Positions 23,705-46,700 of a DNA stretch of 64,000 nt are shown here, in pieces. Position 1 is the stretch's first letter, and each line of letters opens with the position of its first letter. Made by a program: the position numbers and the translations under genes. This stretch comes from Rebecca billardiae RCC1528. Its lineage: Eukaryota; Protista; Haptophyta. The notes beneath the pieces were generated by a model, which was given only the letters and a program-made list of their open reading frames with translations, did no database searches and was not told the DNA's origin. Where the stretch lies: positions 1,488,001 through 1,552,000 of the forward strand of contig OZ251228.1 of NCBI GenBank assembly GCA_965240325.2. Direction: 5' to 3'.

Positions 23705-25303
23705 ATGGCGGCGGACGCTTCCGCGGCGGTCAGGCTCCTCTGGCGCAAGTCGGGGCGCGGCGACGCGCGTGCGACGTTCCTTCTGGCGCGGCGGGCGAAG
23801 GATGGCGACGGCATCGCGCAGGACGAGCGTGAAGCCTTCCGCCTGTACAACCTCGCCGCTGAGCGCGGCTTTGCCGAGGCGCAGACGAGAATGGGCGACA
23901 TCTGCCGGACAGGCGAGCTCGGTCAGCCCGTGGACCTCGAGGCAGCCGTGCGCTGGTTCCGGCTGGCGGCCGAGCAGGGCTTTGCCCAAGCGCAGTGCAA
24001 TCTGGGCATGTGCTACGCGCGCAGCACGGGTGTGCAGCAGGATATGGGCGAGGCAGTGCGCTGGTTCCGGCTGGCGGCCGAGCAGGGCTTTGCTCAAGCG
24101 CAGTTCGGTCTGGGCATGTGCTACGAGTACGAGCAAGGCTCGGGTGCGCAGCAGGATATGGACGAGGCGGCGCGCTGGTACCGACTGGGGGCCGAGCAGG
24201 GCGATGCTGAAGCGCAGTGCAATCTGGGCGCGTTCTATGCGCAAGGCACAGGTGTGCAGCAGGATTGGGTCGAGGCAGCGCGCTGGTACCGGCTGGCAGC
24301 CGAGCAGGGCTGTGCTCAAGCGCAGAGCAATCTGGGCGGGTGCTACGCGCAAGGCGATGGTGTGCAGCAGGATTGGGTCGAGGCAGCGCGCTGGTACCGG
24401 TTGGCGGCTGAGCAGGGCGATGCTCAAGCGCAGCGACAGCTGGGCGCGTGCTACAAGCAAGGCAAGGGTGTGCAGCAGGATTGGGGCGAGTCGGCGCGCT
24501 GGTACCGGCTGGCGGCCGAGCAGGGCGATGCTCAAGCGCAGTGCGATTGGGGCTGGTGCTGCGCGCACGGCGAGGGTGGCGTGCAGCAGAATTGGGGCGA
24601 GGCAGTACGCTGGTACCGGCTGGCGGCCGAGCAGGGCTGCGCTGCGGCGCAGAGCCGTCTGGGCGCGTGCTACGCGCAAGGCACGGGTGTGCAGCAGGAC
24701 TTGGGCGAGGCGGCGCGCTGGTTCCGGCTGGCCGCCGAGCAGGGCAATGCTCCAGCGCAGTTTACTCTGGGCTCGAGCTACGAGCACGGCCAGGGTGTGC
24801 AGCAGGACTGGGGCGAGGCGGCGCGCTGGTACCGGCTGGGGGCGGAACAGGGCTTTGCTGAAGCGCAGTTGAACCTGGGCGCGTGCTACGCGCAAGGCGA
24901 GGGTGTGCAGCAGGATTGGGCCCATGCGGCGCGCTGGTACCGCTTGGCTGCTGATGGCGGGAGCGCAACTGCACACATCGCGATGGGACCGCTGACGCTG
25001 CTGGGCGCTGGAGTGGAGCGTGACGTGGAGGAGGGCGCGCGGCTGCTGCGCCGTGCCCAAGAGCTCGATCCCGACCTCAGAGATGCAGCGTGCGATGTGC
25101 TGGCTGGGTTCGCTGGAGTGCGTGAGGTGGTCTCCCAGTGCTGCATCACCTGCGCACAGACAGGCCGTGGTCTGAAGAAGTGCGAGCGGTGCCACGTGGC
25201 AGTCTTCTGCTCGCGTGAGCACCTGCGCAGCTCGTGGAAGGTGCACAAGCCACACTGCATCGAGTGGTGCGCACAGGCAGCAGGTGCGAATGAAGACGGA
25301 TGA
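23705..25303 (+). CDS. Sel1-like repeat protein with C-terminal MYND zinc finger
   Basis: About 11 repeats of ~36 aa (AQxNLGxCYAQGxGVQQDWxEAARWYRLAAEQG); C-terminal CITC...LKKCERCHVAVFCSREHLRSSWKVHKPHC. Confidence 0.93.
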   Translation: MAADASAAVRLLWRKSGRGDARATFLLARRAKDGDGIAQDEREAFRLYNLAAERGFAEAQTRMGDICRTGELGQPVDLEAAVRWFRLAAEQGFAQAQCNLGMCYARSTGVQQDMGEAVRWFRLAAEQGFAQAQFGLGMCYEYEQGSGAQQDMDEAARWYRLGAEQGDAEAQCNLGAFYAQGTGVQQDWVEAARWYRLAAEQGCAQAQSNLGGCYAQGDGVQQDWVEAARWYRLAAEQGDAQAQRQLGACYKQGKGVQQDWGESARWYRLAAEQGDAQAQCDWGWCCAHGEGGVQQNWGEAVRWYRLAAEQGCAAAQSRLGACYAQGTGVQQDLGEAARWFRLAAEQGNAPAQFTLGSSYEHGQGVQQDWGEAARWYRLGAEQGFAEAQLNLGACYAQGEGVQQDWAHAARWYRLAADGGSATAHIAMGPLTLLGAGVERDVEEGARLLRRAQELDPDLRDAACDVLAGFAGVREVVSQCCITCAQTGRGLKKCERCHVAVFCSREHLRSSWKVHKPHCIEWCAQAAGANEDG

Positions 25304-25758: not shown

Positions 25759-26445
25759 CTACACGGATGACGAGCCGCCGCGCATCCAGCCAAGCCCAAA
25801 GAGCCCGCCACCTCTGGGCTGCTCCGCCTGCTGGGCCGGTGGCGCCTCGGGAGGCGGCTGCGGCGGTGCAGACGGCGGCTGGCTTCGCCCTGGCACGGGT
25901 CGTGACGCGGCCGGCTCCGAGGGCCTGCTCGTCCTCGAAGCTCGGCCCGGCGGCGACTTGGGCGCTTGCGGTGCTGTCCGGTGCCGTGGCTCGCTTTCCC
26001 GTGCAGGCCGGGCTCCAGGCACGCTCAAGAGCCCACTCGGCCTTGCCGATCGGGCGGTCGTCGACTCAGCAGGCTGCGACGACGAGCACGGCTCGCTTTG
26101 CCGGACCGGCCGCCGCGTGCCCGCGGGCTGTGCACCAGCCTGCGGCGCTAGCGGCGCACCCAAAGCCAGCGGGGACCTTGCACTCGTCGCGCCCGCAGCC
26201 AGCGCGGGCCGCAGCGGGCTGGAGCGGACTGCGGGCGACCGAGCCTGGGGCGGCGTCGCGGAGGTGCGCGCCGAGCGTGATAGGGGCGGCGTCGACGCGG
26301 AAGAGCGCGCGGCCAGGGGCGACATGACCGGCGGCGACGAGTTCGACGTCTGGCCCGAAGCCTGCTGCACCGCAACCGCGCCCGTCATTGGCAAGTCGCC
26401 TCGCACGGGCACGGCTCGGCTGCTGTCAAGGCAGGCCGCTGCCGA

Positions 26446-26476
<31 letters not shown>

Positions 26477-29400
26477 TGCCTCTGCGTGCCCGGCGTGAGC
26501 GATGTGAAGGGCTTGGCCCCCTTGCCCGTGAGCGCACTGAGCACGGACGGCCTGTCGCGCTGGGGCCGCTGCTCGACCCGGACGGGCGCCTCCTCAATGG
26601 AGCCGCTCAGCCGATACGCAGCGGCAGCGCCGTCCTCGTCCTTCTGTGAGTTGGGTGTCGCGCGCGCGCGGGCAGGTGGCGGGTGGCGCGCGTGCGCGGG
26701 GGCGTCAGCGCACGGGGCTCGGCCGCTCATCGCGGAGGTGCACGGTGGTGCCCGCCGTGCGGCCGCACGTGACGCATCGCGCCCGCGGCACGCGCGAGCA
26801 GGACAGCTCCGAGCGGTGCGCCGCGCACCTTGCGATCCCTCGCGTAGCGCACGGCGAGGACGAGGAGCAAAATGCAGCAGCAGCAGCCCACGAGGGCGAT
26901 GAAGGCCACGATCGCCACCTGCAAGGGACGCGCCGCGCAGCCGTGGCGCACGCGCGGCGAAGCCAGCCAGGCGCGCGAGCGTGAGCGGCGCGCACGCCGA
27001 GCGCTCAATGGCGCGCACACGCCCGGCGGGCGGTGCGCGCGCCGCGCGCCGCGCGCCGCGCGCCGCGCGCCGCGCCAACTCTTCCTACCTGGCCTTCAAA
27101 TGACACGGTGCGCGACACGTTCTGGCCGAGCAGGCCCTGGTCGGTCGGCGGCGGAGACGCGGGCTGGGCGGGCGGAGGCGAAGGCGGCGGGGGGTTAGAC
27201 GGGTTTGGCGGCGGCGGCGGGCTCGGCGGTGGGCTCGGCGGGCTTGGGGGCGACGGCGGCGGCGCTGGTGGGGATGGCGGTGAAGGCGGCGACGGCGGCG
27301 GTGATGGCGGCGCCGGCGGCGGAGTTGGTGGGGGCGATGGAATCGATGGCGGCGAGGGAGGCGGCGTCGGCGGTGGTGGGCTTGGCGGGCTCGGTGGCGG
27401 GCGGCTCGGCGGCATCGGCGGCTGCGGCGGCGGCGAGAATAAGTCGCAGCTCCCGTCGTTGTACGTCGCGGTCGGGTTGTAGTTGCGCGCCAGCACCGCC
27501 GTACAGCCACCGAACACACAACTGCCGTCCGACACGGTGGCGATCGGGTCGTAGTTCTCCGCGGCCGGGTCGGTGCAGCCGCGGAAGTTGAACTCGCACG
27601 TGTCGGTCACGGTGGCGGTCGGGTTGTAGTTGCTCGCGGCCGTGTTGGCGCAGCCGACGTACTGGCAGTTGGCCGCCGCGATCACCGCGTCCGAGCGGTA
27701 GTTGACCGCCTCCGTGTCCATGCAGCCAACGACGAGGAAGGTGCATGCAGCGGGCGCGTTGGCGGTCGAGTCGTAATTGGTCGCTGTCGGCTCGAGGCAG
27801 CCGAGGAAGAGGCACTGCGAGAAGTCGAGCTGCGTGACTGACGAGTCGTAGTTGGACGCGCTCAGCACGCTGCACCCGACCACCTCGGGAGTGCACGAGC
27901 CGTTGTCGACAGTCGCGCCCGAGAAGTAGTTCTGCGCGCCCACGTCCGTGCAGCCGGGTACGACGCACGTACCGTCGTCGGCAGTCGCGCTCGAGTCGTA
28001 GTTGTCCGCGCTCGGCGCGGTGCAGCCGAGCACGGGGCACACGCAGCCGCCATCGTTCACCGTCGCCGTCGGATCGAAGTTAGTGCAGCCAGATGTTGTG
28101 CAGCCGAGGTAGGCGCATGAGCCGTCGTCCAGGTTCGCGTCCGAGTCGAAGTTCTGCGCGGCCGGATCGATGCAGCCAGTGACGGGCAGCACGCAGAAGC
28201 CGTCGGGTGCGTTCGCTGTCGAGTCGTAGTTGAACGCGATCGGGTTCATGCAGCCAAAGTAGGCGCAGTTCCCGTCGACGTCAGAGCGCGACTCGTAGTT
28301 GTCAGCGGCGGGGTCGAGGCAGCCCACCACGGCGATGTCCACGCAGTCGTTCGAGTCGACGGTCGCGAGCGAGTTGTAGTTGGCCGCGAGCGAGTTGAGG
28401 CAGCCGGTGACCACGCAGCTGCCGTCGTCCGTCGCGGCGAGGGAGTCGTAGTTGTCCGCGCGCGAGTCGGTGCAGCCGTTGACTAGGAAGACGCATGAGC
28501 CAGCGTCATTCACCGTGGCCGTCGAGTCGTAGTTGGCCGCCACCGTCGAGCGGCAGCCCGCGTACTGGCACGAGCCGTCGTCCGTGTCGGCCGCGGCGGC
28601 GAAGGTGATCGAGGCCGAGTCGGTGCAGCCCAGCTTGGCGTAGACGCAGCTGCCGTCGTTCTGGTTGGCGGTCGAGTCGTAGTTCTTCGCGTCGGTCAGC
28701 GTGCACCCGGGCAGCGCGCAGCTGCCGTCGTCGACCGTCGCGAACGACTCGTAGTTGAGAGCGTCGGTGTGTACGCAGCCGGGGATGGCGCCGGTGCACT
28801 TGCCGTCGTTCACCGTGGCGCGCGAGTCGTAGTTGTCCGCCTGCGGGATCGTGCACCCCTTCACGACGCACGAGCCGTCGTCGATGTTCGCCTGCGCGTC
28901 GAAGTTGTTCGCCGCCGAGTCGGTGCAGCCGTGCACGAGGAACGCGCACGAGCCGTCGTTGAAGGTCGCGGCCGAGTTGAAGTTGTCTGCGGCCGGGTTG
29001 GTGCAGCCTGCGAGCGCGCACGTGCCGTCGTCGAGGACGGCGCACGAGTCGAAGTTGTCGAAGAGAGAATCGGTGCACCCGCTGACCGGCATGATGCAGG
29101 AGCCGTCGTCGGCGTTTGCAGTCAAGTCAAAATTGATGGCGGCCGAGTCGATGCAGCCGAGATGGCGGTACGTGCACGTGCCGTCGTCCTGGTTGGCGTC
29201 GGCGTTGAAGTTGATAGCCAGCGTGTCAGTGCAGCCGGGGACGCTGTACGTGCACACGGTCGAGCCCTGCGAGGTCGCATTCACGTTGTAGTTGGTGGCG
29301 AGCGGGTCCACGCAGCCGATCACGTCAAACTCGCACGAGCCGTCATCCACGTTCGCGCGCGCGAAGAAGTTGGTCGCGTTGGTCTGCGTGCAGCCGAGCG

Positions 29401-32400
29401 TCTGGCAGCTCTGGTCATTCACGGTGGCATCAGAGTCGTAGTTGTCCGCGCTCGCGTCGGTGCAGCCCGGCACGGGGCACGCCGGGATGCCGTAGTGCTC
29501 CTGGAGCTCGTTGGTGGCGCACGCCTGCAGCTGGCGGCCTGGCTCAGCGCGCGCGAGTCCGCGCCGCGCGCGCAAGCCGCTCGCGCCCGGACCCTGCCAC
29601 CTGTCCACGTGTGTCCGCACAGCCACCGCGAGGGTGTTCGCGACAGCCGCGAGCTCCTGCGGACTCGGCCCCGTGCTGACCTGCAGGCCAACCGCGTCAC
29701 GCACCGCGTGGACGACGTCAAGCACGGCGCTCGCGTTCGCAAGGACCGACTCGACCATCTCGCCGCCGCCGGGCGTGGTCAGGCACAGGCTCGTCAGCAT
29801 GTCGAGTGCGCCCTGCTCGCTCGTGCGCAGCGACACGTACGGCCCGAAGAGCTGCACGGCGAGGTCGAGCAGCTCGGCGACCACGACGGATGCGCGTATC
29901 ACGTGCAGCGAGCGCGTGTCACCCGCCACGTACTCGCGCAGCGGGCGGTACCGCAGGATGTCCGTCTCCTCGTAGTAGTCGAAGCAGCGGAAGAGGTTGA
30001 GCTGCGCCTGCTCGTCCGCGACCGCCGTCGGCCAGTTGGGCAGCATGTGCATGTACAGCGTGGTGAGCGGCGACACGACGAGCGCGTTGAGCGGCGCGCG
30101 CATCGAGAAGTGCAGAGACTCGCTGCTGATCGTGTCGCGGCACTGCGTCGACGCTCCCACGTACAGCGTCGCCTCGCGGCTGCGGTAGGAGAGCTCAAAG
30201 CCGCCGCTCACGTCGCTGGTCGCGCGCCCGACGCGCGTGCCGTCCGCCAGCACAGCCTCGACGAGGCACTGCCGGCGCGGCGCGACCGACTGGACCACGG
30301 CGCGCGAGTACTCAAACGAGCACTCCGATGGCGACGGAATGTCCGCCGACGGGTTGTAGTTGATCGCGCTCGACTGCATGCAGCCCTTGTACTTGCACGG
30401 GCTGTACCGCGTCGCGCCGGCCACGTAGTTGGTCGCGAGCGAGTCGCGGCAGCCGTAGATGTGCTCGACGCACGAGCCGTCGTCGAAGGTGGCGAGGTTG
30501 TTGAAGTTACGCGCGTTCGGGTCGGTGCACCCGCCGATGATGCACGTCGAGAGCGCAAACTCGATGTTGGCCGCCGAGTTGTAGTTGGAGGCAGCTGGCT
30601 TGGTGCAGCCGTACACCTTGGCCACGCAGCTGCCGTCGTCCACGTTGGCGGACGCGTCGTAGTTGAGCGAGTTGCGCGCGGTGCACCCAGGGCGAGCAGC
30701 CACGCAGCCGCCGTTGTCCTGCGTCGCGGCCGAGCGGTAGTTGAGCGCACTCGGGTCGGTGCAGCCGAGCACGGGGAAGACGCAGCCGCCGCCGTCGACC
30801 GTCGCGCTCGAGTCGTAGTTGGTCGCACCGGTCGAGAGGCAGCCTGGGTAGTTGTACGTGCACGAGCCGTCGTCCGTGTTGGCGGCGGGCAGGAAGTTGA
30901 GCGCGAGCGAGTCTGTGCAGCCGTCGACGGCGAACGCGCAGCTGCCGTCGTTCACGGTGGCGCTCGAGTCGTAGTTGAGCGCACGCGTCGACATGCAGCC
31001 TAGCACGGCGTACACGCACGCTGCGGCGATGTTTGCATCCGCGCGGAAGTTGATCGCCGCCGAGTCGGGGCAGCCGCGCACGGGGAGCACGCACGAGCCG
31101 GGGAGCAGCGTGTTCGCCAGCGAGTTGTAGTTGAGCGCCGTCGGATCGGTGCAGCCGGTGACGACGACGACGCAGTCGCTCGGCGTGCGCTCCGTGTTGG
31201 CGCGCGAGTCGTAGTTGGTCGCGGCAGGGTCTGTGCAGCCGAGGCGCGCCAGCACACACGGCGTGTCGCCCGTCTGCACGGTGGCCTCCGAGTCGTAGTT
31301 GAGGGCGAGCGGGTTGCGGCAGCCCGCGACGCGTAGCACACACGCCGCGGGGTCGTCGGAGCCCTCCGCGTTGAAGTTGAGCGCGTCCGGGTTGGTGCAG
31401 CCAACGTCGGTGCTGAACGTGCACGAGCCATCGTACACCGTCGCGAGCGAGTTGTAGTTGTCCGCCAGCGTGTGCGTGCAGCCCTCAATCTCGTACAGGC
31501 ACTCGGCGGGCACCACAGCGTCTGAGCGGTAGTTGATCGCAGAGGAGTCGAAGCAGCCGCGCAGCGCAAACGTGCAGTTGCCGTCGTTCGCCGTGGCGTA
31601 CGAGAGGTAGTTGACGGCCGTTGGCACGTTGCACCCGAAGATGACGCACGCGCCGCCGTCCACCGTAGCGAGCGGGTCAAAGTTGGATGCACGAGAGTCG
31701 GTGCAGCCGACGCGCGGGAAGGAGCACGAGCCCGCGAGGAACCGATTTGCGGTGGAGTCGTAGTTGTCCGCGCTCGTCGACGTGCAGCCGTAGTAGAGGC
31801 AGCCGCCGTCGTCCTGCGTCGCGTCCGAGTCGTAGTTGGCCGCGCCGGGCGAGGTGCAGCCGGCGCAGCTCGTGAAGTCGCAGTCGGCCGCGCTGCTCAT
31901 CAGCGTCGCGCTCGGGTCGTAGTTGCACGCGGCCGTGCGCGTGCAGCCAAGCACCTCGTACACGCACGTGCCCTCCTCCGTGTCCGCCGCGCTGTCGAAG
32001 TTGACCGCGCTCGAGTCGGTGCAGCCCAGCTTGTACGGCAGGCACGAATCGTACTCGGTGGCGGTCGAGTCGTAGTCGGCCGCCCACGAGTCGGTGCAGC
32101 CGGAGTAGCCGTACTCGCAGACGACGTCCTCCGGCTGCGTCGTCGCGTCCGGCCGGAAGTTGAGCGCGGTCGAGTCGAGGCAGCCCGGCACCGGGTACAC
32201 GCAGCAGCCCGCCGTGGCACAGCGGAAGGCGAGTGAGTCGTAGTTGGCCGCGACCGGGTCGACGCAGCCGGTGCGAGGTGGGGGCGACGGCGGCGGCATC
32301 GGCGGCGGCGATGGCGACGGCGGTGGGCCCGGTGGCGGGCTCGGCGGTGGTGCTGGTGGCGGGCTCGGCGGTGGCGGCGGGAGCGGGCTCGGAGGGGGTG

Positions 32401-35400
32401 GGCTGGGCGGTGGGCTCGGAGGCGCGCGCGGAGCGCCGAGTGGCAAAGGCGGAGGTGGGCTGGGAGGCGGCGGGCTGGGCGGCGGGCTGGGCGGCGGGCT
32501 GGGCGGCGGTGGTGGCGGTGGGCTCGGCGGAGGGCTGGGCGGGGGGCTGGGCGGCGGGCTGGGCGGCGGGCTGGGCGGCGGGGATGGCGGTGGGCTCGGC
32601 GGAGGGCTCGGCGGAGGGCTGGGCGGCGGGCTGGGCGGCGGGGTGGGCGGCGGGCTGGGCGGCGGGCTCGGTGGCGGGCTGGGCGGCGGGCTCGGCGGTG
32701 GGCTCGGCGGAGGGCTGGGCGGCGAGCTGGGCGGCGGGCTTGGTGGCGGGCTCGGTGGCGGGCTCGGTGGCGGGCTCGGCGGCGGGGTGGGCGGCGGGCT
32801 TGGCGGCGGGCTCGGCGGCGGGCTCGGCGGCGGGCTTGGCGGTGGGCTGGGCGGCGGGCTGGGCGGCGGGCTGGGCGGCGGGCTGGGCGGCGGTGGTGGC
32901 GGCGGGCTCGGAGGCGGGCTGGGCGGCGGGCTGGGCGGCGGGCTGGGCGGCGGGCTCGGCGGCGGGGATGGCGGTGGGCTCGGCGGCGGGCTCGGCGGCG
33001 GGCTGGGCGGCGGGCTGGGCGGCGGGCTGGGCGGCGGGCTCGGAGGCGGGCTCGGCGGTGGGCTGGGTGGCGGGCTGGGCGGCGGGCTGGGCGGCGGGCT
33101 GGGCGGCGGGCTGGGCGGCGGGGATGGCGGTGGGCTCGGCGGCGGGCTCGGCGGCGGGCTGGGCGGCGGGCTGGGCGGCGGGCTGGGCGGCGGGCTCGGC
33201 GGTGGGCTCGGCGGCGGGGATGGCGGTGGGCTCGGCGGCGGGCTCGGCGGCGGGCTGGGCGGCGGGCTGGGCGGCGGGCTGGGCGGCGGGCTCGGAGGCG
33301 GGCTGGGCGGCGGTGGCGGCGGTGGGCTCGGCGGAGGGCTGGGCGGCGGGCTGGGCGGCGGGCTCGGCGGCGGGCTGGGCGGCGGGGATGGCGGCGGGCT
33401 CGGCGGCGGGCTTGGCGGCGGGCTCGGCGGTGGGCTGGGTGGCGGGCTGGGCGGCGGGCTCGGAGGCGGGCTGGGTGGCGGTGGTGGCGGCGGGCTCGGA
33501 GGCGGGCTGGGCGGCGGGCTGGGCGGCGGGCTGGGCGGCGGGCTGGGCGGCGGGGATGGCGGTGGGCTCGGCGGCGGGCTCGGCGGCGGGCTGGGCGGCG
33601 GGCTGGGCGGCGGGCTGGGCGGCGGGCTCGGAGGCGGGCTGGGCGGCGGTGGCGGCGGTGGGCTCGGTGGCGGGCTGGGCGGCGGGCTCGGCGGCGGGAA
33701 TGGCGGTGGGCTCGGCGGCGGGCTGGGCGGCGGGCTTGGTGGCGGTGAGGGCGGCGGCGGTGGCGGCGGTGAGGGTGGTGGCGGCGAGGGCGGTGGAGAG
33801 GGCGGCGGTGGCGGCGGAGGCGAGGGCGGAGGCGGTGAGGGCGGCGGTGAGGGCGGCGGAGGAGGCGGAGGCGACGGCGGCGGTGGCGACGGCGGCGGCG
33901 AGGGCGGCGGCGGCGGCGGTGGCGAGGGCGGTGGTGGCGACGGCGGCGGCGAGGGCGGCGGCGGCGGCGGTGGCGACGGTGGCGGTGGCGAGGGCGGCGG
34001 CGAGGGCGGCGGTGGCGGCGGTGGTGACGGCGGCGGAGGCGACGGCGGCGGCGAGGGCGGTGGCGGCGGCGGTGACGACGGTGGCGGCGGTGAGGGCGGC
34101 GGCGAGGGCGGCGGAGGAGGCGGAGGCGACGGCGGTGGCGGCGACGGTGGCGGCGAGGGCGGCGGCGGCGGCGGTGGCGACGGCGGTGGTGGCGACGGCG
34201 GCGGCGACGGCGGCGGCGGCGGCGGTGGCGACGGTGGCGGCGGTGAGGGCGGCGGCGAGGGCGGCGGAGGAGGCGGAGGCGACGGAGGCGGTGGCGATGG
34301 GGGCGGCGAGGGCGGCGGCGGCGGCGGTGGCGACGGCGGCGGTGGCGACGGCGGCGGCGAGGGCGGCGGCGGCGGCGGTGGCGAGGGCGGTGGTGGCGAC
34401 GGTGGCGGCGAGGGCGGCGGCGGCGGCGGTGGCGACGGCGGTGGTGGCGACGGCGGCGGCGAGGGCGGCGGCGGCGGCGGTGGCGACGGTGGCGGCGGTG
34501 AGGGCGGCGGCGAGGGCGGCGGAGGAGGCGGAGGCGACGGCGGTGGCGGCGACGGTGGCGGCGAGGGCGGCGGCGGCGGCGGTGGCGACGGCGGTGGTGG
34601 CGACGGCGGCGGCGACGGCGGCGGCGGCGGCGGTGGCGACGGCGGCGGCGGTGAGGGCGGCGGCGAGGGCGGCGGCGGCGGCGGTGGCGAGGGCGGTGGT
34701 GGCGACGGTGGCGGCGAGGGCGGCGGCGGCGGCGGTGGCGACGGCGGTGGTGGCGACGGCGGCGGCGAGGGCGGCGGTGGCGGCGGTGGCGACGGTGGCG
34801 GCGGTGAGGGCGGCGGCGAGGGCGGCGGCGGCGGCGGTGGCGACGGCGGTGGTGGCGACGGCGGCGGCGAGGGCGGCGGCGGCGGCGGTGGCGACGGTGG
34901 CGGCGGTGAGGGCGGCGGCGAGGGCGGCGGAGGAGGCGGAGGCGAGGGCGGTGGTGGCGACGGTGGCGGCGAGGGCGGCGGCGGCGGCGGTGGCGACGGC
35001 GGTGGTGGCGACGGCGGCGGCGAGGGCGGCGGCGGCGGCGGTGGCGACGGTGGCGGCGGTGAGGGCGGCGGCGAGGGCGGCGGAGGAGGCGGGGGCGGTG
35101 ACCAGGGCACCGCCACCAGCACGTCGAGGCCAGAGTCATAGGTTATGATGGTGTCCACAAATTTATTGTAGTAGATCTTGTCATAACTGCCGTCGTTGGC
35201 GTAGACCCAATCCCCTGTTACTGGATTGTTGGCTCCCCCACCGTCCCCCTCGACGTGGATAACAGAGCGAGTTGCCTTATAGTCGGCGAAAATTACGTCT
35301 CGGCCAGGCCCACCTGTGCGCGTGCGCGGCGCATGATGTGCCCGACCAAGTGCGTCGCACGTGCAGGGGACACGTGTGCTGGTTAGTCGAGCGCGCGCGC

Positions 35401-36504
35401 GCGCCCGATTCAGCACAATATCAGCGCGCTCTGGCGGGGCGAGGACAGTGTGTTTGAGTGCTCACCGCCAGCCGCGCACCGAAAATGGTGGTATTGCCGG
35501 TCCCCTCAGTCGAGCTGTCCGCATAGCCCTCCTTGATCGTGTCGTCGCCGGCACCGCCTGGCGGCCGAGGAGGGAGGTGCGCAGTCGCGGCGCCGCAACG
35601 CGGGTGGATGAGCTGGCGGAGTGGCGGTGCGAGCGCTGGCGGCGCTGACGTGTGCTGCATGCCTCGCGCTGGCGCATGCGGCAGCAGATCGCCAGACAGA
35701 TGCATGCGCGCGCGCTGTCATGAACCGATGATGGACGACAAGGATGGATGGCAGACATGGCGCGCACCGAAGAGAAAATTCTGCACTTGGTAGATGCCGG
35801 AGTCTGTTGTACTTTGTGCGGCTCCACCTTGGATGACGTCATCGCCGTCGTCACCGTAGAGCCGGTTCACCACCCTGCCCTGCTTGATGGTATTGGACGC
35901 AGGTGTCAGGGAATCCCCGCCAATGATCGTGTCCGCTCCATCGCCGCCGTGGATCAAGTTGAACACAGAGCCTCCCCGGTAAGTATCCACGCCCACTCCG
36001 CTGTCACCGCCGTCCAGCACGTCGTCTCCCCCCAGACCAGCGATGCGGTTGTAGGCGCTGTCGCCGTCAACACCCCACCAGCCGACGTAGGCATCCGAAG
36101 CAGAGGACCCACTGATAGCATCATTCCCCTCCGTGCCGGTTTGGATGTATACACCGTCATCGTATCCAGAAGGCGCGAGCGAGCGCCTGCAGGGGCGCCG
36201 CGCGCACCGGTGCGAGCATGCGCGCACGCACGTGAGAAGGCGCTGCCGGCATGGTCCTCAGTCGCACGCGCCCCGTCAGGCGGGGCGCCCGGGCCGCGAC
36301 GAGCGCGCCGGCGGCGCGATCGCCACCTCACCCATGCGCGCCAGGGTTGTTTGTGTGCTGCAGGAGCGAGCGGTCGTCATCATCCGCTAGCTCCGAATCC
36401 CATGTCGGCTGGTCCCAGATGCGCGTGAATGCGAGCGCGCCCGTCCCCGCGCGTAGCGCCGCCAGCACGAGACAGGTGGCGGCGAGTTCGCCCCGGCGCG
36501 TCAT
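25759..36504 (-). CDS. Giant (~3,289 aa) type I membrane protein: signal peptide, RTX-like head, Ser-Pro rod, ~52 GCTD Cys repeats, TM, Pro/Ser-rich tail; exons 36504-36332, 36186-35768, 35557-35480, 35313-27089, 26918-26829, 26643-25759
   Basis: All five introns are GT..AG and phase-consistent (9,870 nt coding). Signal MTRRGELAATCLVLAALRAGTGALA; RTX-like GTEGNDAI, GLGGDDVLDGG, GGDGADTIIGG, GDDGDDVIQGG, GGAGDDTI, GGPGRDVI; (SPPP)n; repeats GCTDxxAxNY/FDxxAxxDDGSC; TM VAIVAFIALVGCCCCILLLVLAV followed by RYARDRKK. Confidence 0.85.
32275..35102 (-). repeat. Coding minisatellite for an extensin-like Ser-Pro rod
   Basis: Two sub-arrays: a 51-bp unit (SP7SP3SP4) at ~33750-35100 and a 12-bp unit (SPPP) at ~32480-33750. 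Confidence 0.95.

Positions 36505-38143: not shown

Positions 38144-38232
<89 letters not shown>
38144..38232. repeat. (TA)n microsatellite
   Basis: About 44 units, directly visible. Confidence 0.97.
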
Positions 38233-38234
<2 letters not shown>

Positions 38235-39328
38235 CTCAGTAGTGAGTGAATGTGGGCCTGTTTTATTTCTACCAGATTCCATTTACTATGTCACGGCGAC
38301 AAACCCGTGCTCGCCAGTGGGAATCGGTGTCACGCTCCGTTGGGTGTACCTCTCACGGCCGATGGCGGCCCCCACGTGCGCAAGGAATGCGATTCGTGCA
38401 CTCCTCGGTGACCGGTGAGTGCACGAATCCAGTTGCGGCGCTCGTCCGCCTCGTCGTTGTCGCACACGAGGTACACCCAACACCATGGGTCGGATCCCAG
38501 AACTCTCCGCGCGCTCGCGCCTGCGCGGCACTGGCAGGCTTGTTCTCATCATCTTGGCCAAGACTGCAGCCTGAAAGATGCGCGAGGGCGCGTGTGCACG
38601 CCTTTCCGCGCGTCATGGGTGCGCGTGGCACGCACCTTGTAATATTATACGCCGAGGAGGCCTGAGCATCCGGCCTACTAACCTTCCGCGATCACGTTCA
38701 AATGCAGGCAGCAAGCTGCAAGCAAGCGCACGCCGAACGGAAGCATCTCAAGCTCGACAAGGTAGTGGCGGCGGAGCGTTTAGAGCTGGTGGCGATTGCA
38801 GTCCATCTGGCTGTGAACTGGTCGCTAACTGACACGGGTGCGACGCAGCAGCCAAGGCAGAGTGCTTGCAGCTTGCAGAGGGCCTCCAGCTGCAGCGCCG
38901 GTTTGCCGCCGCTCGCCGCCGCTGCATCGTGCACACTGCCGTGCACCGCGAGTGACCCCTGTGTCAAGGCGAAGCACCACGGCAAGGCGAATCAGCATGT
39001 CTGACAACACCCTTCGCCACAGCGCAGCGCCTCAACACGAGAATGCGCGAATGACGTGCCATCACTTCTCCGGACTAGCTCCGGGGCCCGCACCAGCGGG
39101 CAAGCCGCCATTGTACCGCGTTTTGGCGAATGTCGCCTTTGGGCTCTCGTAGAAATAAAACAGGCCTGCATGACCTGCCGCCGCCAGTGCGCGGACGAGT
39201 GGCCCGCAAGCGAGTGCTACGGTCTACGGAGTGAGCGTAATTCTACGGTGCCGGTGCCGGTGATGCGGTAGTCAGTAGTGCTCGCAGTGATCGCCGCAAT
39301 CATCACTCATCAGGCGGGATGATGCTAG

Positions 39329-42300
39329 CTAGCTCATGTCGATGAGGCCCTTCGAGTTGCCAATGGCAAAGGCGAGGCGCTCCGAGAGGGTCTCGGCGCG
39401 TGAGTACGGGGGCAGCTTGAGCACGTGGAAGCACGTCGACGCAGACGGCAGCTCGCCGTCCGGCCCGGCGGGGCAGTGCTTGAGGCTCACCTGCGGCGCG
39501 GCGCGCGACGCGCAGGCGCGGGCGGCATCGCGTCAGTGACAGGCGGGCGCGCTGCGGCGGGCGCGCGGCGGCACGTGTCGCACGCACCGAGAGCAGTGGC
39601 TGCAGCGCGCCGAGCCCTGCCGGAGGCAGGTGCGGGCAGCCCGTCGTGAACTGCACAAACGCGCGGCGCTCGGGCTGCTCCATGCGCAGCTGGTGCAAGC
39701 GAGACGCCGCGGCGCGCGCGCGGGCGGCGGGTTCCGTGTGGGTGCGGTGTGGTGCGGGTGGGGAGCGAGCGCGGGTGAGCGGTGCGGCGGGGAAGGCAGG
39801 GCGCGCACGCGGGCGGGCGCGCGGGGCGCGCGCGCACCAGCGTGGCGATGAGCGCGCGGTAGGTGGGCGAGCTGCGCGTGAAGCCCTGCTGCGGGACCAC
39901 GTACTGCAGCAGGCTCGGCTGTGCGCGGCGCGCGGCGCGGGTCGTGTGCCGCGTTGCGAGTGGCGGGGGCGCGCGGCGCGGTGTCGCGCGGTGAACACAC
40001 GGGCCACGCGCGCTGCACGCGCGTGCGGCGCTCGCGCGTGCGCTCGCTCGCGCGTGTGTGCGCGCTCGCTCGCGCGTGTGCGTGCGCGCGCTCGCGCGTG
40101 CGGCGTGTGTTGGGTGCCGCGCGCGTGCGGTGTGTGTTGGGTGCCGCACGTGTGCGGTGTGTGTTGGGTGCCGCACGTGTGCGGTGTGTGTTGGGTGCCG
40201 CACGTGTGCGGTGTGTGTTGGGTGCCGCACGCGTGCGGCGCACCTCGTCCCACTCGATCGAGCGGTCGCCGCACAGCAGTGTCTGCAGCTCGGCAGCGGA
40301 GAGCGCGTGTGCCGCGCGCGCGCTCAGCGTCTCGCGCAGCCCCTCGGAGCACGCCTCCACCTGCCGCGCGATGCCCGCGCCCATCAGCAGCTCGAGCATA
40401 CCCGCGGCGTACTCGCCCGCATTCTCCGCCGTCACGTCGCGCTCGGCGCCACCGGCGCACAGCTCAATGCCCGACTGCGCGTCCGCAAAGACGAGGCCGT
40501 AGTCCTCGACGCTCGCGCCCGAGCGGAGCCGCAGCGCGCGCGCACCCGGCGCGTCGCCCGCGCGCAGCCGCGCGTCGCGCTCGCGAGCGAACTCGGCGAG
40601 CTCGAGGATCGCGGCGCCCTTGCGCCCGTGCACTTCGAGCAGCGCGCGCGCGAGCGGCGAGCGCGCGCGCGCGCCCGCGCCCGCCACGCCAAGAGCGTCT
40701 AAAAGAACCACGCTCCCGCCGCCGCCCGCGCCGCCGCCCGGCGCGCCAGCCGGCGCGGCGGGCGGCTCGTCTGGCAGGCAGCCGTGCGCGACGAGCGCGA
40801 CGAACGGGATCGACAGCGGCAGCGGCAGCACCTGCCCGTCCTTGAGCGCCTTCCCCAGCAGCCGCCCGACCAGCCGGAACCTCTCGAGAAGCTTCTCGAG
40901 AAGGTCCGCGCTCGGGTGCGCGGACGGGTGCTGGGGCGCGGGGAAGAGGCCTGCCGGTGGGTTGAGGTGCGTCGGCCCGGCGGGTGGGTCGGGCGCGAGC
41001 GGCGCGCGGCCGGCGCCGCCGCCGGGGCCACCCTCCTCGTCGTCCAGCCAGAGGGGCAGCGCCGCGTTCGTCGAGCGCTCCTGCAGCGCAAGCGCGACGG
41101 CAGAGTAGAACTCAGCGGTCACGCCCGTGCCCGAGCCCGACTCGCCGGCAAAGGTGACGTCTAGCAGAGCGCCCGAGTTGGCGTGCTGGCGGAGCAGCCG
41201 CTCGGCGGACGCGAGCAGCTGCGAGCGCTGCACCGTCACGCGCTCGCGCCGCAGCGCGCCCAGCCTCGACTGTCGGCTGCCAGCCCCGCTCCCGCTGAGC
41301 CCGACCGACGAGTGCTCCTCATCAGCTAGCCTCTGCACGAGCCGAGGCGCGCCGAGCGCGTGCGTCAGGAAGAAGCGCTCGCGCGCGCCGAGGGGCACGA
41401 GCTGGCGCGCGCCGAGCGCGAGCGCGGCGCACCACGCGGGCGTGCGGCCCGTCACGGCGCACAGCGGCTCGGCCAGCTGCGCCTGCAGCCGCCGGCCGAG
41501 TCGCTCGTGTGCCCAAGGTACGTCACGCGCAGGGCGGCGGCGGCCGCCCGCGGGCGGCGAGGCGGAGGAAGCGGGCGCGCCGCCGCCGGCCGGCGCGAGC
41601 CGTCGCAGCAGCAGCGAGAGCGCGACGAGCGCTCGCAGCGCCGGGCCGAGAGGCTCGAGCTGCGAGCGCGCGCGCCGCAGCCACGCCCACGCTCTGAGCA
41701 GCTCGGCGTCGGCGGCGGGCGCGGCGGCTCGGAGCAGCGCGGCGGCGCGGCGCGGCGCGGGGCTCAGGGCGCCGCCGGCCGCGCCGGCGCTCAGCGGTAC
41801 GTCCACGCCGAGCGCGTCGTGAGCCGTCGCGGCCATCAGCCCCGCCGCCGCCTCGTCCTCGTCGAGGCTCACACTCGGCACGGCCGCGTCCGCAGCGGCC
41901 GCGTCCGCAGCGGCCGCGTCCGAGGTCCGGGCGGAATGTCCGGTGCCGCCAGCGCTCGAGCACGCGGGATCGGCGCCGCCGCCGTGCGCGTCAGCGTTCG
42001 CGCCGCCGCCGTCCGCGCCGGCGTCGTACAGCACCGTGTACACCGGCGTGGCGGAGGCGGCGGCGCCGGCCGACGGCGCGCGGCTGCTGCTGCCGCCGCC
42101 GCCGCCACCGGACTGCGCGCCGCCGTCGCCCTCGGCGCTGCCGGCGCGGCGGCCGCCACCGTCGGCGCCGGCGTTCACCAGTGTGCCAAAATGGCGGTGC
42201 ACGATCTCGAAGATCGTCGCCTCCGGCTCCAGCGGCAGCAGCGCGCCGCGGCCGGCGGCGGCGGCCGCCGCGCCGCCCGCGGCCGGCGGGGCGCGCGACG

Positions 42301-43709
42301 CCGAGCGCTCAACGAACAGCCGAACGGGGCCACGCGCGGCGGCGGGCGGCGGGGCGGCGTGGGCAGCATCTCCGGCGCGCGCCGCGCCGCGCGCGCCGGC
42401 GCCGGAGCGCGCGGGCGGCGGCGCGCCGAGCCCAAGCCCGGCGTGCGCCTGCGCCAGCCGGTCGAGCGTGCGCGCCAGCCGTCGCGCCTCCTCCTCCTCC
42501 TCCTCCTCCTCCTCCTCCTCCTCATCACCTTCGTCGTCCTCGTCCTCCTCGTCGCCCATCGCCTCGCCGCCGTCGTCGTCGGCCTCCGCGTCCGCCACCG
42601 CCCGCACGGCCGCATCCTCCACGTCCGTGCCCGCGGCCGCGGCGGCGCTCATGAGCAGCTCGTCGATGAGGCCGGAGAGAGCCGCCTCCGCCGCCGCCGC
42701 GTCGGCGGCGCCGCCCGCGGCGGCGGCGGCAGCGGCGGCCATGCTGGCGGCGCCCCTGCTGCCTGGCGCGCGCCCAGGCTCGGGCTCGGTGCCGCTGGCG
42801 GCGGCAGCGGCCGCGTCTGCGGCCGCGTCGCCGCCGCCAGCATGGCCGTCGTCAGCATCGCCGCCGTCAGCATGGCCGCCGTCAGCATCGCCGCCGTCAG
42901 CATGGCCGCCAAACGGCTGCCGGCTGCGCCGCCCGAGCCCATACACTCCTGGGCTCTCGGCCTCGGCGCCGTCCTCGGCCTCGGCCTTGGTCGAGGGGAG
43001 CTGCTTCGAGCCGCCGACCACCGAGTCCGTCGCCGTGCCCGCCGTCGCCCCGGAGGACGACGACGCGCCGCGCTCAGCCTCGGGCTGGCGCGGCGAGCCT
43101 GAGGCACCGCCGTCCGCGTCGCGCGCGCCGCGCGCGTACTGCTGCTGCCTCACGAGCTGCGGGCGCGCGCCGTGCGTGCGGATCGAGTTGAACGGGTGGC
43201 TCTCCTCCGCGTGCACGCCCGCGTCGAAGCACACGGCGCACAGGTCAAAGTCGGCGCACGCCGCGCACTTGTACCGCACGCCGATGATCGGGTGCGCGCC
43301 GCAGCCGTCACACGTGACCCCGCGGTGCACGCGTGCGCCGCTGCCCGCGGCGGCCGCGGCCGCGGCCGCCGCGGCGCCGGCGAGCTCGCTCGGCACGCGG
43401 CGCAGAAGCTGCTCCGAGATGAACGTCGCGAGCTGCTCCACCGTCGCCAGCGGCTCGATCGCGACGAGCTGCGGGTGCGGCTCGCCCGTCCCCAGCGCGA
43501 GGCCGAGGTGGGCGGCGAGCGCGCTCCCGACGTCTGAGCCCGCGGCCGCGCTACTGCCCTCGCGTGGTCTCAGGCTGAGGCGGATGGGCGTGGTGAGCGC
43601 GCGCACGCACTCGTCGCCCGCGCTGCTGCTGCCGCGCCGCGCCGCGCCGCCGTCCGCGCGCGCGCCGCCGCCGCCGTCCTCGCCGTCCTCCGCGCCGCCG
43701 CTGCCGGCC

Positions 43710-43748
<39 letters not shown>

Positions 43749-46700
43749 GCCGCGCCGCCGGCCAAACCCGCAGGCCCCAATAACACACTCAGCTGGACTG
43801 GGAGTGCCTGCGACTCGAGCGTGGAGATGTGCGCGTGGAGCACGCGCGCGCTCGTCGCGAGCGACTCGCCGTCCACGCACAGCGCGTCGCGCACCGCGCG
43901 CAGCCGCTCGATCGCTCCGGGCGGCGGCTCGGCCACGCCGCCGCCCGCGCTATCCTCGCACCCCTCGCCCTCCGCGCCTGCGGCGCCCGCGCTCGCGGCG
44001 CCGGCGTCGGCGCCGGCGCCGACGAGCGCGTCGAAGAGCGCGGTGAGCACGCCGGACGCGTGGAGGTCGTGGACGGAGACGGGCGGCGCGGCGCCCGTGC
44101 CCAGCGCCGCGCCGAGCGCGCCCACCGCGCGCGAGAACTCGGCGGGTGGCGCGGTGGGCGTCAGCTGAGAGCGCACCGTCTCCAAGGCAGCCGCGGCCGA
44201 GGGCGTGCCCGAGGCGCCTGCGGCGGCGAGCGCGTCGGCGGCGGCGCCGATGGGCGAGCCCGCGGCCGCGCACGCGTCGGCGACGCGCGCCGCCCACGCG
44301 AGCACGTCGCCGTCGTCCGCGCCGCCCAGCCGCGCCGCCGCACTCACGGGCGACGCGACGCTGTGACCGGGTGCGGGTGGGCTGGGCGCGAGCAGCGCAG
44401 GCGCGCCTGACGACGACGACGGCGGCGCGCCATCGGCGCGGCCGGACTCGGCGTCAGCACCGGACGGCTTGCCCGGCGTGGAAGGCGCGGCGGCGGCGGC
44501 GGGCGCGGCGGGCGCGCTCACGCCGAGCACCGTCGGCGCCGGCTGCGCGCCGCGCGCGCGCGGCAGCGTCATCGGCGGCAGCGCGGGGCGCAGCGGGCTA
44601 GACCCCAGTGCTGCCGGCGAGCCGTGCTGAGCTCCGCTTGCGCTACCGCCGCTGCCGCCGCCGCCGCCGCGCGCGGCGCCGCCGGCGCTGCCGAGGGCGA
44701 GGGGCGAGGGCTGCGGCGAGGAGACGTGCGAGCCGCTGAGCAGGTGCGCCACCGAGTCGACGACGAGGTGCCGCTTCAGCTCGCGCACCGCCGCGCCGCC
44801 GCCGTGCCGCGCGAGCGCCGCGCTCAGCCGCAGCGCGCCCACGGTTGCATGCCTCGAGTCTCGCGCGTTGAGAACATCTGCGACGAAGGCGAAGAGCTGG
44901 AGCGCGGCCTCCTCGCCCGCGTCGTCGTCGAGCTCGGGCTCCGCGTCGGAGCCCTCCGCCCGCCCCTCCTCGCGCAGCGCGAGCGCCGCGCACACCGCCT
45001 CGGGCGCCGCGCTCTCGACGAAAGAGCACAGCGCGCCGAGCACGCGCGGCTGCAGCCGCGGCGTGCCCGACTGATGAGCGTGCACGAGCGCGGGCAGCAG
45101 CGCGCGCAGCACGCCGGGCTGCTCGGCGGCGCACCACTCGCCCGCGCGCGCCGAGCGCGAGCCCGACTCGTCCTCCGCCGGCGCGCCCGCGCCCTCCGAC
45201 CCGCCGCCCGCGCCGCCGCCGCCGCCCGCCGTCTCCGACAAAATCTCGAGCACGAGATCGAAGTTGCCCGCGGCCGGGTGTGCGCCTCGCGCGGCGGAGG
45301 GCGTGGAGACGGGGCCGCCGCCGACGGGCGGCGGCGGGGCGGAGAATGCGGACGGGCGGTCGGCGGCGGGCGCCGCCGCGCGCGCCGCCGCCTCCTGCTC
45401 CGCCGCCGCCTTGCGCGCCGCCGCCTCCTCGGCGGGCGTGCGGCCGCGCCGGTTGCGCGCGCGCGTGTCCGCGCCGTGCTGCAGCAGCACGCGCACCGCG
45501 TCCGCGCGCCCAAAGTAGGCGGCGAAGTGGAGCGCGGTGCCGGTGGAGATGTGCGAGGTGCTGTAGTTGACGCTGCTCGCGTGCTGCGCCAGCGTCTCGA
45601 TCACCTCCACCGACGCCGAGTACACACCCCACATCAGCATCGACTGGTGGCACTGGTCGGTCGCGTCGACGACCGGCTGGCCGCCGAGGTCGATCAGCGC
45701 GCAGACGGAGGGGTGGTCGTCGCGCTTGATCGCGTCGCGGAGGAGCTCGGCGGCCTCGGAGTCCTGCTCCGACGACGAGCCGTACGCGTGCTGCGGGATG
45801 TACTCCTCCACGCGCCGCGCCGCCGCGGCCGCGCCCTCGGCCGCGCCCGCCGAGCCGGGCGGCGGAGCGAACATCAAAGAGCTGAGCGCACGCAGGAAGC
45901 GGAGGAGCTCGCTGGCGGAGGCCTCGACGCCCTTCGAGGGCGAGGCGGTGGTGCACGACTCGCGCAGCATCGCCGCGAGCGCCGGCGCGAGCCCGCGCTG
46001 CAGGCAGCTCCGCAGCACCGCCGGCGCCGCCGAGCACAGACGCCAGAGCACGAGCAGCATGAGTGACAGAGTCGACGGCGCGGCGCGCGGCGCGGAGAGC
46101 ACGCCGATGAGCTCGGCGCTCACGTCGTCGGCGATGTGGTGCAGCGCGGCGGTGTTGCCCGAGACGCTGAGCACGCTCGTCAGCGACGTCATGCCCTGCG
46201 CGCGCGGAGCGGCGGCGCGGCGCGGCGCGCGGCGCGGCGCGCGGGGCCTGTGAGTGACCGGCGGTGGGCGCGTGGCGTGCGCGCGGCGCGAGCGCGCACC
46301 TGCAGGGCCGCGTGCTGCAGCTTGGGCCGGTCGCTGTCGCCGATCAGCCGCGAGAGCACCGGCGCCGCCTCCTCCGCGTGCGTCTCGTCCGCCGGGCACG
46401 CCGCGAGCACGCCGCGGAGCGCGACGAGCGCCGACTCAAGCACGTCCGGGGGATAGAGCGCGTCGCAGACCTCGATGAAGGGGAGGAGCTGGCCGACGGC
46501 GACGTGCGCGCCGCCCGGGACGGCGCGCGCCGCCTGCCGCCCCTCGCGCCGGCACAGCATCTCGAGCACCTTCACCGCGCACTCGGCGAGGTTGAGCGAC
46601 TCCTCAGAAGTGTCCTCGTCCGCGCCCGTGATCGTGAGCGCGTTCAGGCAGAGGGTGGCGACGTTGGAGCGGACGGCGACGCGCGAGAGGCGCGGGTCGA

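Follow-up and report, generated by a model that had tools for sequence, protein, structure and literature searches.

Giant modular surface fibres are a known kind of protein. The agglutinins SAG1 and SAD1 of Chlamydomonas are proteins of ~340 kDa in which a proline-rich shaft carries an outward globular head needed for adhesion (PMC2113723, PMC4362204), and bacterial repeats-in-toxin (RTX) adhesins are very long, repetitive surface proteins with distal ligand-binding parts (PMC3034196, PMC10523503). Extensins and the hydroxyproline-rich glycoproteins (HRGPs) of algal walls, such as GP1, hold long Ser-Pro(3-7) tracts for which glycosylation and a polyproline-II rod conformation are expected (PMC5371791, PMC11785195); such Ser-Pro rods are classic wall components (PMC12223506), and two haptophytes have been reported to possess GT47 sequences whose nearest counterpart is the extensin arabinosyltransferase ExAD (PMC5371791). 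Haptophytes are major bloom formers and calcifiers whose surface is the contact site for viruses, grazers and bacteria, and the molecular make-up of that surface is little known. Here, we describe a gene within 64,000 nucleotides of DNA from the haptophyte Rebecca billardiae RCC1528 (assembly GCA_965240325.2, contig OZ251228.1, positions 1,488,001 to 1,552,000; this whole stretch is hereafter the window, and coordinates count from its first letter), the sequence of which is best fitted by one large type I surface protein that joins an RTX head, a Ser-Pro rod, two arrays of a cysteine-bearing repeat (GCTD) around a globular insert, a proline-rich stalk, a transmembrane helix and a tail. In function and shape, SAG1 and SAD1 appear to be the closest known system.

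The predicted gene runs from position 36504 down to 25759 on the minus strand in six exons totalling 9,870 nt, equivalent to 3,289 residues (Table 1). Its main open reading frame (ORF) in the translated window, 27005-35416 (-), has 2,803 codons and reaches its first methionine only at residue 1040, so that with 1,039 codons lacking methionine it cannot start alone and needs upstream exons. Splice junctions were read base by base, and similarity searches were run exon by exon with the exons unjoined. All five predicted introns (145-210 nt) have GT-AG ends and matching phases, with exon 1 giving two nucleotides and exon 2 one to the codon split by intron 1, and GTGCGCG is common to three of the five donors. 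The motif [LI]-[HYF]-GGxGxD occurs twice within exon 2 and twice more across the junctions of exons 2/3 and 3/4, as exon 2 finishes on LF and exon 3 on IF, each with the opening base of a split glycine codon after it, and exon 2 is open at both ends without a stop of its own at the donor. GC content at third codon positions (GC3) at the end of the head, encoded by the opening 67 codons of exon 4, is 0.63 and resembles that of exon 2 (0.68), which ties the RTX exons to the rod-bearing ORF, as this low-GC3 head end shares one continuous ORF with the rod and arrays. A preliminary description of the locus had claimed a single spliced modular protein, and the canonical in-phase junctions, the late methionine and the RTX pattern across junctions all uphold that claim; every module it listed was found in place on the minus strand.

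Table 1. Exons, introns and protein modules of the predicted surface-protein gene, in order of transcription
Feature	Position	Strand	Description
Exon 1	36504-36332	-	ATG at 36504 and signal-peptide-like N-terminus; 57 codons plus 2 nt
Intron 1	36331-36187	-	145 nt, GT..AG; donor GTGAGG at 36331
Exon 2	36186-35768	-	RTX calcium-binding repeat block (predicted), 139 whole codons
Intron 2	35767-35558	-	210 nt, GTGCGCGC..CAG, phase 1
Exon 3	35557-35480	-	one further RTX turn, GGAGDDTIK; first Gly codon split by intron
Intron 3	35479-35314	-	166 nt, GTGCGCGG..CAG, phase 1
Exon 4	35313-27089	-	8,225 nt, inside the uninterrupted ORF: head end, rod, both GCTD arrays, insert, stalk
Last RTX nonapeptide (GGPGRDVIF) and C-terminal part of head	35313-35111	-	exon 4, GC3 0.63
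Ser-Pro rod	35101-32276	-	942 residues: 17-residue unit ~26 times, then SPPP ~109 times
GCTD array 1	32272-30317	-	25 repeats
Globular insert ('SPLTTL' domain)	30316-29468	-	~283 residues, between the two arrays
GCTD array 2	29467-27434	-	27 repeats, mostly 26/24 residues in alternation
Proline-rich stalk	27433-27146	-	~96-100 residues
Intron 4	27088-26919	-	170 nt, GTAGGA..TTGCAG, phase 0
Exon 5	26918-26829	-	transmembrane helix with CCCC, then RYARDRK
Intron 5	26828-26644	-	185 nt, GTGCGCGG..CACAG, phase 0
Exon 6	26643-25759	-	low-complexity tail, 294 residues and stop; least certain exon

The two arrays together hold 52 GCTD repeats of 23-29 residues, each of which starts with GC and carries N[YF] and a second cysteine, the consensus of the 24-26-residue repeat being GC...N[YF]...A...DDGSC; earlier counts of 25 and 27 proved exact. 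A strict GCTD pattern matched 49 times in this frame across the 64-kb window and not once in the other five, and the arrays are therefore not a product of chance. In a 108-row alignment of four-repeat blocks, G1, C2, N9 and C21 were invariant, and identity in the repeat core was 50% between window and bacterial repeats vs 51% within the window. An AlphaFold2 model of four repeats, a step the preliminary description had proposed, reached a mean predicted local distance difference test (pLDDT) score of 94.3 and is largely irregular apart from short bridges. Single repeats that stand alone in bacterial relatives retain both cysteines, which favours a C2-C21 disulfide within each repeat. The 26/24-residue alternation of array 2 extends over ~17 units, making the real unit a 50-residue pair, and the repeats of array 1 are mostly 26-28 residues long.

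With array 2 as query, more than 7,257 of 8,000 scored proteins matched at E <= 0.001 (best E = 6.5e-146), and in the 120 best matches the type IX secretion system (T9SS) sorting domain PF18962 was present in 84 and PF13585 in one. The named proteins in that set come from Flavobacteriales, and the frequency of PF18962 points to marine Flavobacteriales. In 100 of these 120 best bacterial matches the longest array lies after at least 250 N-terminal residues and ends no more than 200 from the C-terminus, and the median distance from array end to C-terminus (127 residues) approximates a T9SS sorting domain plus linker; the position of the array therefore marks it as a spacer between a variable head and an anchor in those bacteria. 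A genome scan with array 2 recovered two loci only, both in Flavobacteriales, though by exact 8-mer patterns that have little bearing on taxonomic range. The preliminary description had regarded the repeat as typical of large marine bacterial and archaeal surface proteins; the bacterial part of that statement stands on the numbers above, and the archaeal part has one Thermoplasmatota structure row to its credit. That row, a cupredoxin protein, was found among ESM Atlas matches of the GCTD model that otherwise comprised unnamed bacterial clusters and T9SS proteins, and the eukaryotic Atlas clusters nearest to GCTD by sequence features are labelled Haptophyta. The repeat matched no Pfam or NCBIfam family, a PDB sequence search with array 2 found no relative, the best PDB hit of the four-repeat model in Foldseek had E = 2.5, and a wide PDB search with VIA-align 2 returned no chain at Z >= 2.

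A viral carrier of GCTD (more than 500 IMG/VR contigs, L073-L152) was rejected: five sampled proteins look bacterial, four of them bearing PF18962 and one an SprB repeat, their DNA is 30-35% GC, and the contigs resemble parts of Flavobacterial chromosomes or the flanks of prophages. Separately, the Pfam model PsaN (PF05479, photosystem I subunit N) matches GCTD repeats in the bacterial proteins P0017 (E = 4e-13) and P0055, and a faint precomputed PsaN match lies on an Emiliania huxleyi gene (L003, 9535-9955) where the ORF translation shows GCTD repeats; the model has no match on the arrays of the window. PsaN and the GCTD repeat may share a local cysteine motif.

Relatives of eukaryotic type repeat much of the scaffold. 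P0121 and P0124 derive from Logan contigs of 4.6 and 5.3 kb, each consisting of one ORF end to end, and P0130 derives from a JGI contig. The order in P0124 is array, globular domain, array, proline stalk, another domain, transmembrane helix and tail, and that in P0028 is arrays, stalk, domain, transmembrane helix and tail. Two arrays around a SPLTT-type domain are thus found in the window, P0121/P0124 and P0130, and a stalk, a single transmembrane helix and a tail follow the arrays in the window (via two predicted introns) and, within one ORF, in P0121/P0124 and P0028. All of these relatives (P0121/P0124, P0130 and P0028) hold the scaffold order or parts of it in single ORFs on intron-free contigs, which look like transcripts, and they corroborate the array-to-tail order that had been proposed for one protein. 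A lamin-tail head in P0124 is not supported, as Pfam found nothing significant on residues 1-210, and Pfam likewise gave nothing significant on the domain before the transmembrane helix of P0028 and P0124. The closest named relative is EMIHUDRAFT_225855 of E. huxleyi (P0005), which aligns to 99% of array 2 at 35% identity. The locus of this relative contains a proline rod, a pair of GCTD arrays separated by a non-repeat insert, a Cys-rich head on which Pfam found nothing significant, and hydrophobic C-terminal segments; it is broken by assembly gaps, and the deposited gene model is a fragment that starts mid-repeat. It differs from the R. billardiae gene in its rod unit, of the FPPGKAPTPPP type, and in its other, Cys-rich head. 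In strain CCMP1516 (L003, 2909-9541) the segment of rod and first GCTD array occurs twice around a 3.3-kb gap, either as a real tandem duplication or as an assembly artefact.

At the other end of the R. billardiae protein, exon 1 contains a hydrophobic core (maximum 11-residue Kyte-Doolittle score 2.58) followed by an A-L-A site. Exon 2 matches the RTX family PF00353 (HemolysinCabind) in four stretches at 37.3 bits vs a cut-off of 23 (E = 2.5e-9), and the head holds six nonapeptides, four GxxGxDxUx in exon 2 and one each at the start of exons 3 and 4, by which it is predicted to bind calcium. The ESM Atlas clusters nearest to exon 2 are bacterial RTX proteins, a PDB sequence search with exon 2 found no match, and in a metagenome scan the matches of the RTX exon were all generic RTX proteins of bacteria (32-48% identity), with no orthologue from an alga. 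The block is N-terminal, follows a signal-peptide-like exon and is split by introns, an arrangement other than that of type I secretion. Across the head (35111-36186), GC3 is 0.63-0.68 vs 0.91-0.94 in the arrays, insert and transmembrane exon, and the neighbouring genes have values of 0.78 and 0.90; codon usage thus breaks sharply inside one gene, and the head may be a later addition.

Proline (740) and serine (189) make up 79% and 20% of the 942 residues of the rod. Tandem Repeats Finder resolved it into an array with a period of 51 nt and multiples (33741-35097) and another with a period of 12 nt (32466-33769), with nucleotide matches of 85-91%. In 25 units of the 51-nt array, every one of 88 minor variants is a third-position change in the Ser/Pro frame, and in the SPPP array changes at codon positions 1 and 2 are equal (33 and 33), which we attribute to switches between AGC and TCG serine codons. 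Because variation in the rod unit is synonymous only, it argues for a rod that is translated and under selection for its Ser-Pro reading, and against a collapsed or meaningless repeat. The rod contains the repeated Ser-Pro(3 or more) motif of extensins and HRGPs; it has no tyrosine, and the extensin cross-link motifs YxY and VYK do not occur in it.

The transmembrane segment of exon 5 (maximum 19-residue Kyte-Doolittle score 3.2, GC3 0.93) is followed by R/K residues, and the tail is rich in P, A, S and R. No T9SS sorting domain (PF18962, PF13585) was found in the arrays, insert, head pieces or tail exon, the rod, stalk and transmembrane exon being unscanned. The predicted C-terminus, S-S-V (25759-25775, -), fits the class I PDZ-ligand pattern, which in a low-complexity tail may well have arisen by chance.

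Few relatives were found for the insert between the arrays. An exhaustive HMMER search returned three matches among 1.8 billion representatives, a profile search contributed nothing beyond close kin of a single bacterial group, and a homologue search with the length range set by the whole ORF returned none. Two of the three relatives are of eukaryotic type, P0121/P0124 (BLASTP E = 8e-12) and P0130, in which the domain again lies between two GCTD arrays; the third is a bacterial group with an immunoglobulin-like surface domain that has the SPLTT core in common, and its contigs also encode Laminin_G_3 and TSP3-like proteins. AlphaFold2 modelled the insert (mean pLDDT 65) as a beta-sandwich (residues 1-75) followed by a helical bundle. 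The best PDB match of the fold, the PgcA non-heme domain, had Z = 6.4, below the tool's stated noise level, as were the matches of the beta-sandwich to transthyretin-like, MG and NTE domains (Z 4-5.7). The insert ends in a basic RARRGL...GRQL stretch, and a G-R-R-[LA] motif is present after the insert at about 29540-29600 (-), ORF residues about 1940-1960; around the basic motif (residues 233-256) the model has low confidence, and this stretch is probably exposed. Motifs of the same type also occur after the insert or between the arrays in P0124, P0130, P0108, P0028 and P0005. Such a motif is a possible processing site.

SAG1 and SAD1 are likewise giant and combine a shaft with a distal head, and SAG1 also has a C-terminal integral membrane piece, but they belong to the green-algal lineage and have no reported RTX head or GCTD arrays; the likeness is architectural. 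Flavobacteriales T9SS cargo, such as protein KDC12_05890 of a metagenome-assembled genome (P0019), has a 24-26-residue repeat of near-identical consensus in an array between head and anchor; it differs in a PF18962 anchor in place of a transmembrane helix, in arrays of ~15 repeats, in DNA of 30-35% GC, and in having neither Ser-Pro rod nor introns. Bacterial RTX adhesins and other RTX proteins, LapA, MpIBP and FrhA among them, possess the same GGxGxDxUx calcium-binding nonapeptides, but theirs are C-terminal with a type I secretion signal, whereas here they are N-terminal, follow a predicted eukaryotic signal peptide and are split by introns, and the extender modules differ as well. Unlike in extensins and HRGPs, the rod is without Tyr motifs and is one module of several in a membrane-anchored protein. 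The surface protein is therefore not a bacterial RTX adhesin, because its RTX block is N-terminal and without a type I secretion signal (PMC3034196), nor T9SS cargo, because it has no sorting domain, nor, as Tyr motifs are missing from it, a classical extensin. The preliminary description did not recognise the architecture as one already described, and our literature search agreed, finding no published account of either the repeat or the architecture; the GCTD family was found in no Pfam or NCBIfam entry and no paper. A definition of this family would provide annotation for many proteins of ocean metagenomes in one step.

We propose, as the probable though by no means certain explanation, that the gene product is a type I membrane glycoprotein that acts as a display scaffold, holding a calcium-stabilised head far from the cell. 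The protein would enter the secretory pathway and sit in the plasma membrane with its N-terminus outside, so that the order outward would be disordered cytoplasmic tail, transmembrane helix, proline stalk, 27 GCTD repeats, insert, 25 GCTD repeats, rod and, at the tip, the RTX beta-roll. Four adjacent cysteines in the transmembrane segment are candidate palmitoylation sites. The rod would be hydroxylated and O-glycosylated into a stiff polyproline-II rod of ~290 nm at 0.31 nm per residue, and the GCTD arrays, each module stapled by its own C2-C21 disulfide, would form a protease-resistant stalk, as they apparently do in Flavobacterial T9SS cargo. The head, as the ligand-binding part, would fold only once it had reached the calcium-rich sea water outside the cell. 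Relatives would keep the scaffold and swap heads, giving surface receptors or adhesins of differing specificity, and because the relatives keep the scaffold and change the head, we interpret the family as a scaffold that displays heads for recognition at the surface. This gene and the related sequences suggest a family of membrane-anchored fibres of great length, the tips of which can be exchanged, and which are candidates for surface recognition; roles as a calcium-dependent adhesin or in prey capture or scale attachment, suggested earlier, are conceivable.

Several observations weigh against this proposal. Among the searches made, no relative carrying the RTX head was found, the RTX block is short and interrupted, and the codon usage of the head departs sharply from that of the rest of the gene. 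The splicing of all five introns and the binding of calcium are predicted from sequence, and glycosylation of the rod, location at the surface and any ligand are putative. At the C-terminal end, codon periodicity in exon 6 is weak (GC by position 0.72/0.74/0.81), the tail has no similarity to that of P0124, and retention of intron 5 would cut it to ~40 residues.

An alternative for the same gene model is a structural part of the cell covering, a spacer or cross-linker that would tether organic scales or form a glycocalyx and in which the RTX head would serve as a calcium-dependent cross-link or folding cap and not as a specific binding site. The bulk of the protein is indeed rod and stalk (942 rod residues and 52 repeats), and Ser-Pro rods are at home in walls (PMC12223506). 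A rod without tyrosine, however, offers no extensin-type cross-link motifs, differing heads on a conserved scaffold suit varied recognition better than a uniform matrix, and the combination of a transmembrane anchor and a long cytoplasmic tail suggests a link with the inside of the cell; we regard a structural role as doubtful, though still worth serious consideration. The head might also belong to a different gene, with the RTX exons encoding a small secreted protein and the rod/GCTD ORF forming a separate gene with a start or exons yet to be seen, given that splicing is predicted, that GC3 is 0.63-0.68 in the head vs 0.91-0.94 in the arrays, and that high GC gives long ORFs in many frames. 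Such a division sits badly with a low-GC3 composition that runs 67 codons into the rod ORF, with the 1,039 codons of that ORF that lack a methionine, with canonical in-phase junctions that continue the RTX periodicity, and with the two open ends of exon 2, which lacks a stop at the donor, and we consider it highly improbable. Bacterial contamination was rejected on the strength of the predicted introns, the Ser-Pro rod, the GC3 of 0.93 and the eukaryotic neighbouring genes.

A recognition or agglutination molecule might instead be cut at the basic motif after the insert, which would free an N-terminal fibre of ~1,970 residues that a membrane stub would retain. In Chlamydomonas, cleavage of the 340-kDa SAG1 precursor yields an agglutinin as well as an integral membrane piece (PMC4362204), and agglutinin canes point their heads outward (PMC2113723); recurrence of G-R-R-[LA] in the window, P0124, P0130, P0108, P0028 and P0005 of E. 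huxleyi, in what the model of the insert suggests is an exposed stretch, would agree with such a cut. As Arg-rich proteomes of high GC often contain basic motifs of such short length, the putative site is identified by its motif and the likeness to SAG1 is architectural, we judge cleavage to be very unlikely. The occurrence of one repeat in haptophytes and in Flavobacterial cargo raises the question of gene transfer or of common use near algal cells. It is a long shot that the GCTD array is an attachment code shared by haptophytes and Flavobacteria, spread by gene transfer and setting which bacteria settle on which alga, with the module a new disulfide-stapled fold; bacterial T9SS and algal GCTD proteins would then bind each other or a common calcium-bridged ligand. 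We continue to favour the display scaffold as the working explanation for this gene.

The genes on either side are separate from the surface-protein gene. A convergent gene at 23705-25303 (+) is a single ORF that encodes 11 Sel1 repeats together with a C-terminal zf-MYND finger. Upstream, an ORF of 2,288 codons at 39533-46399 (-) combines ankyrin repeats, a ZZ-finger and a HECT ubiquitin ligase domain; because the HECT match ends at model position 202 of 306, further exons of this gene probably lie downstream of 39533, and a repeated 'TRAAPNTHR' tract follows. Between this gene and the surface-protein gene, upstream of the latter, the intergenic DNA contains a long (TA)n microsatellite at about 38170-38260.

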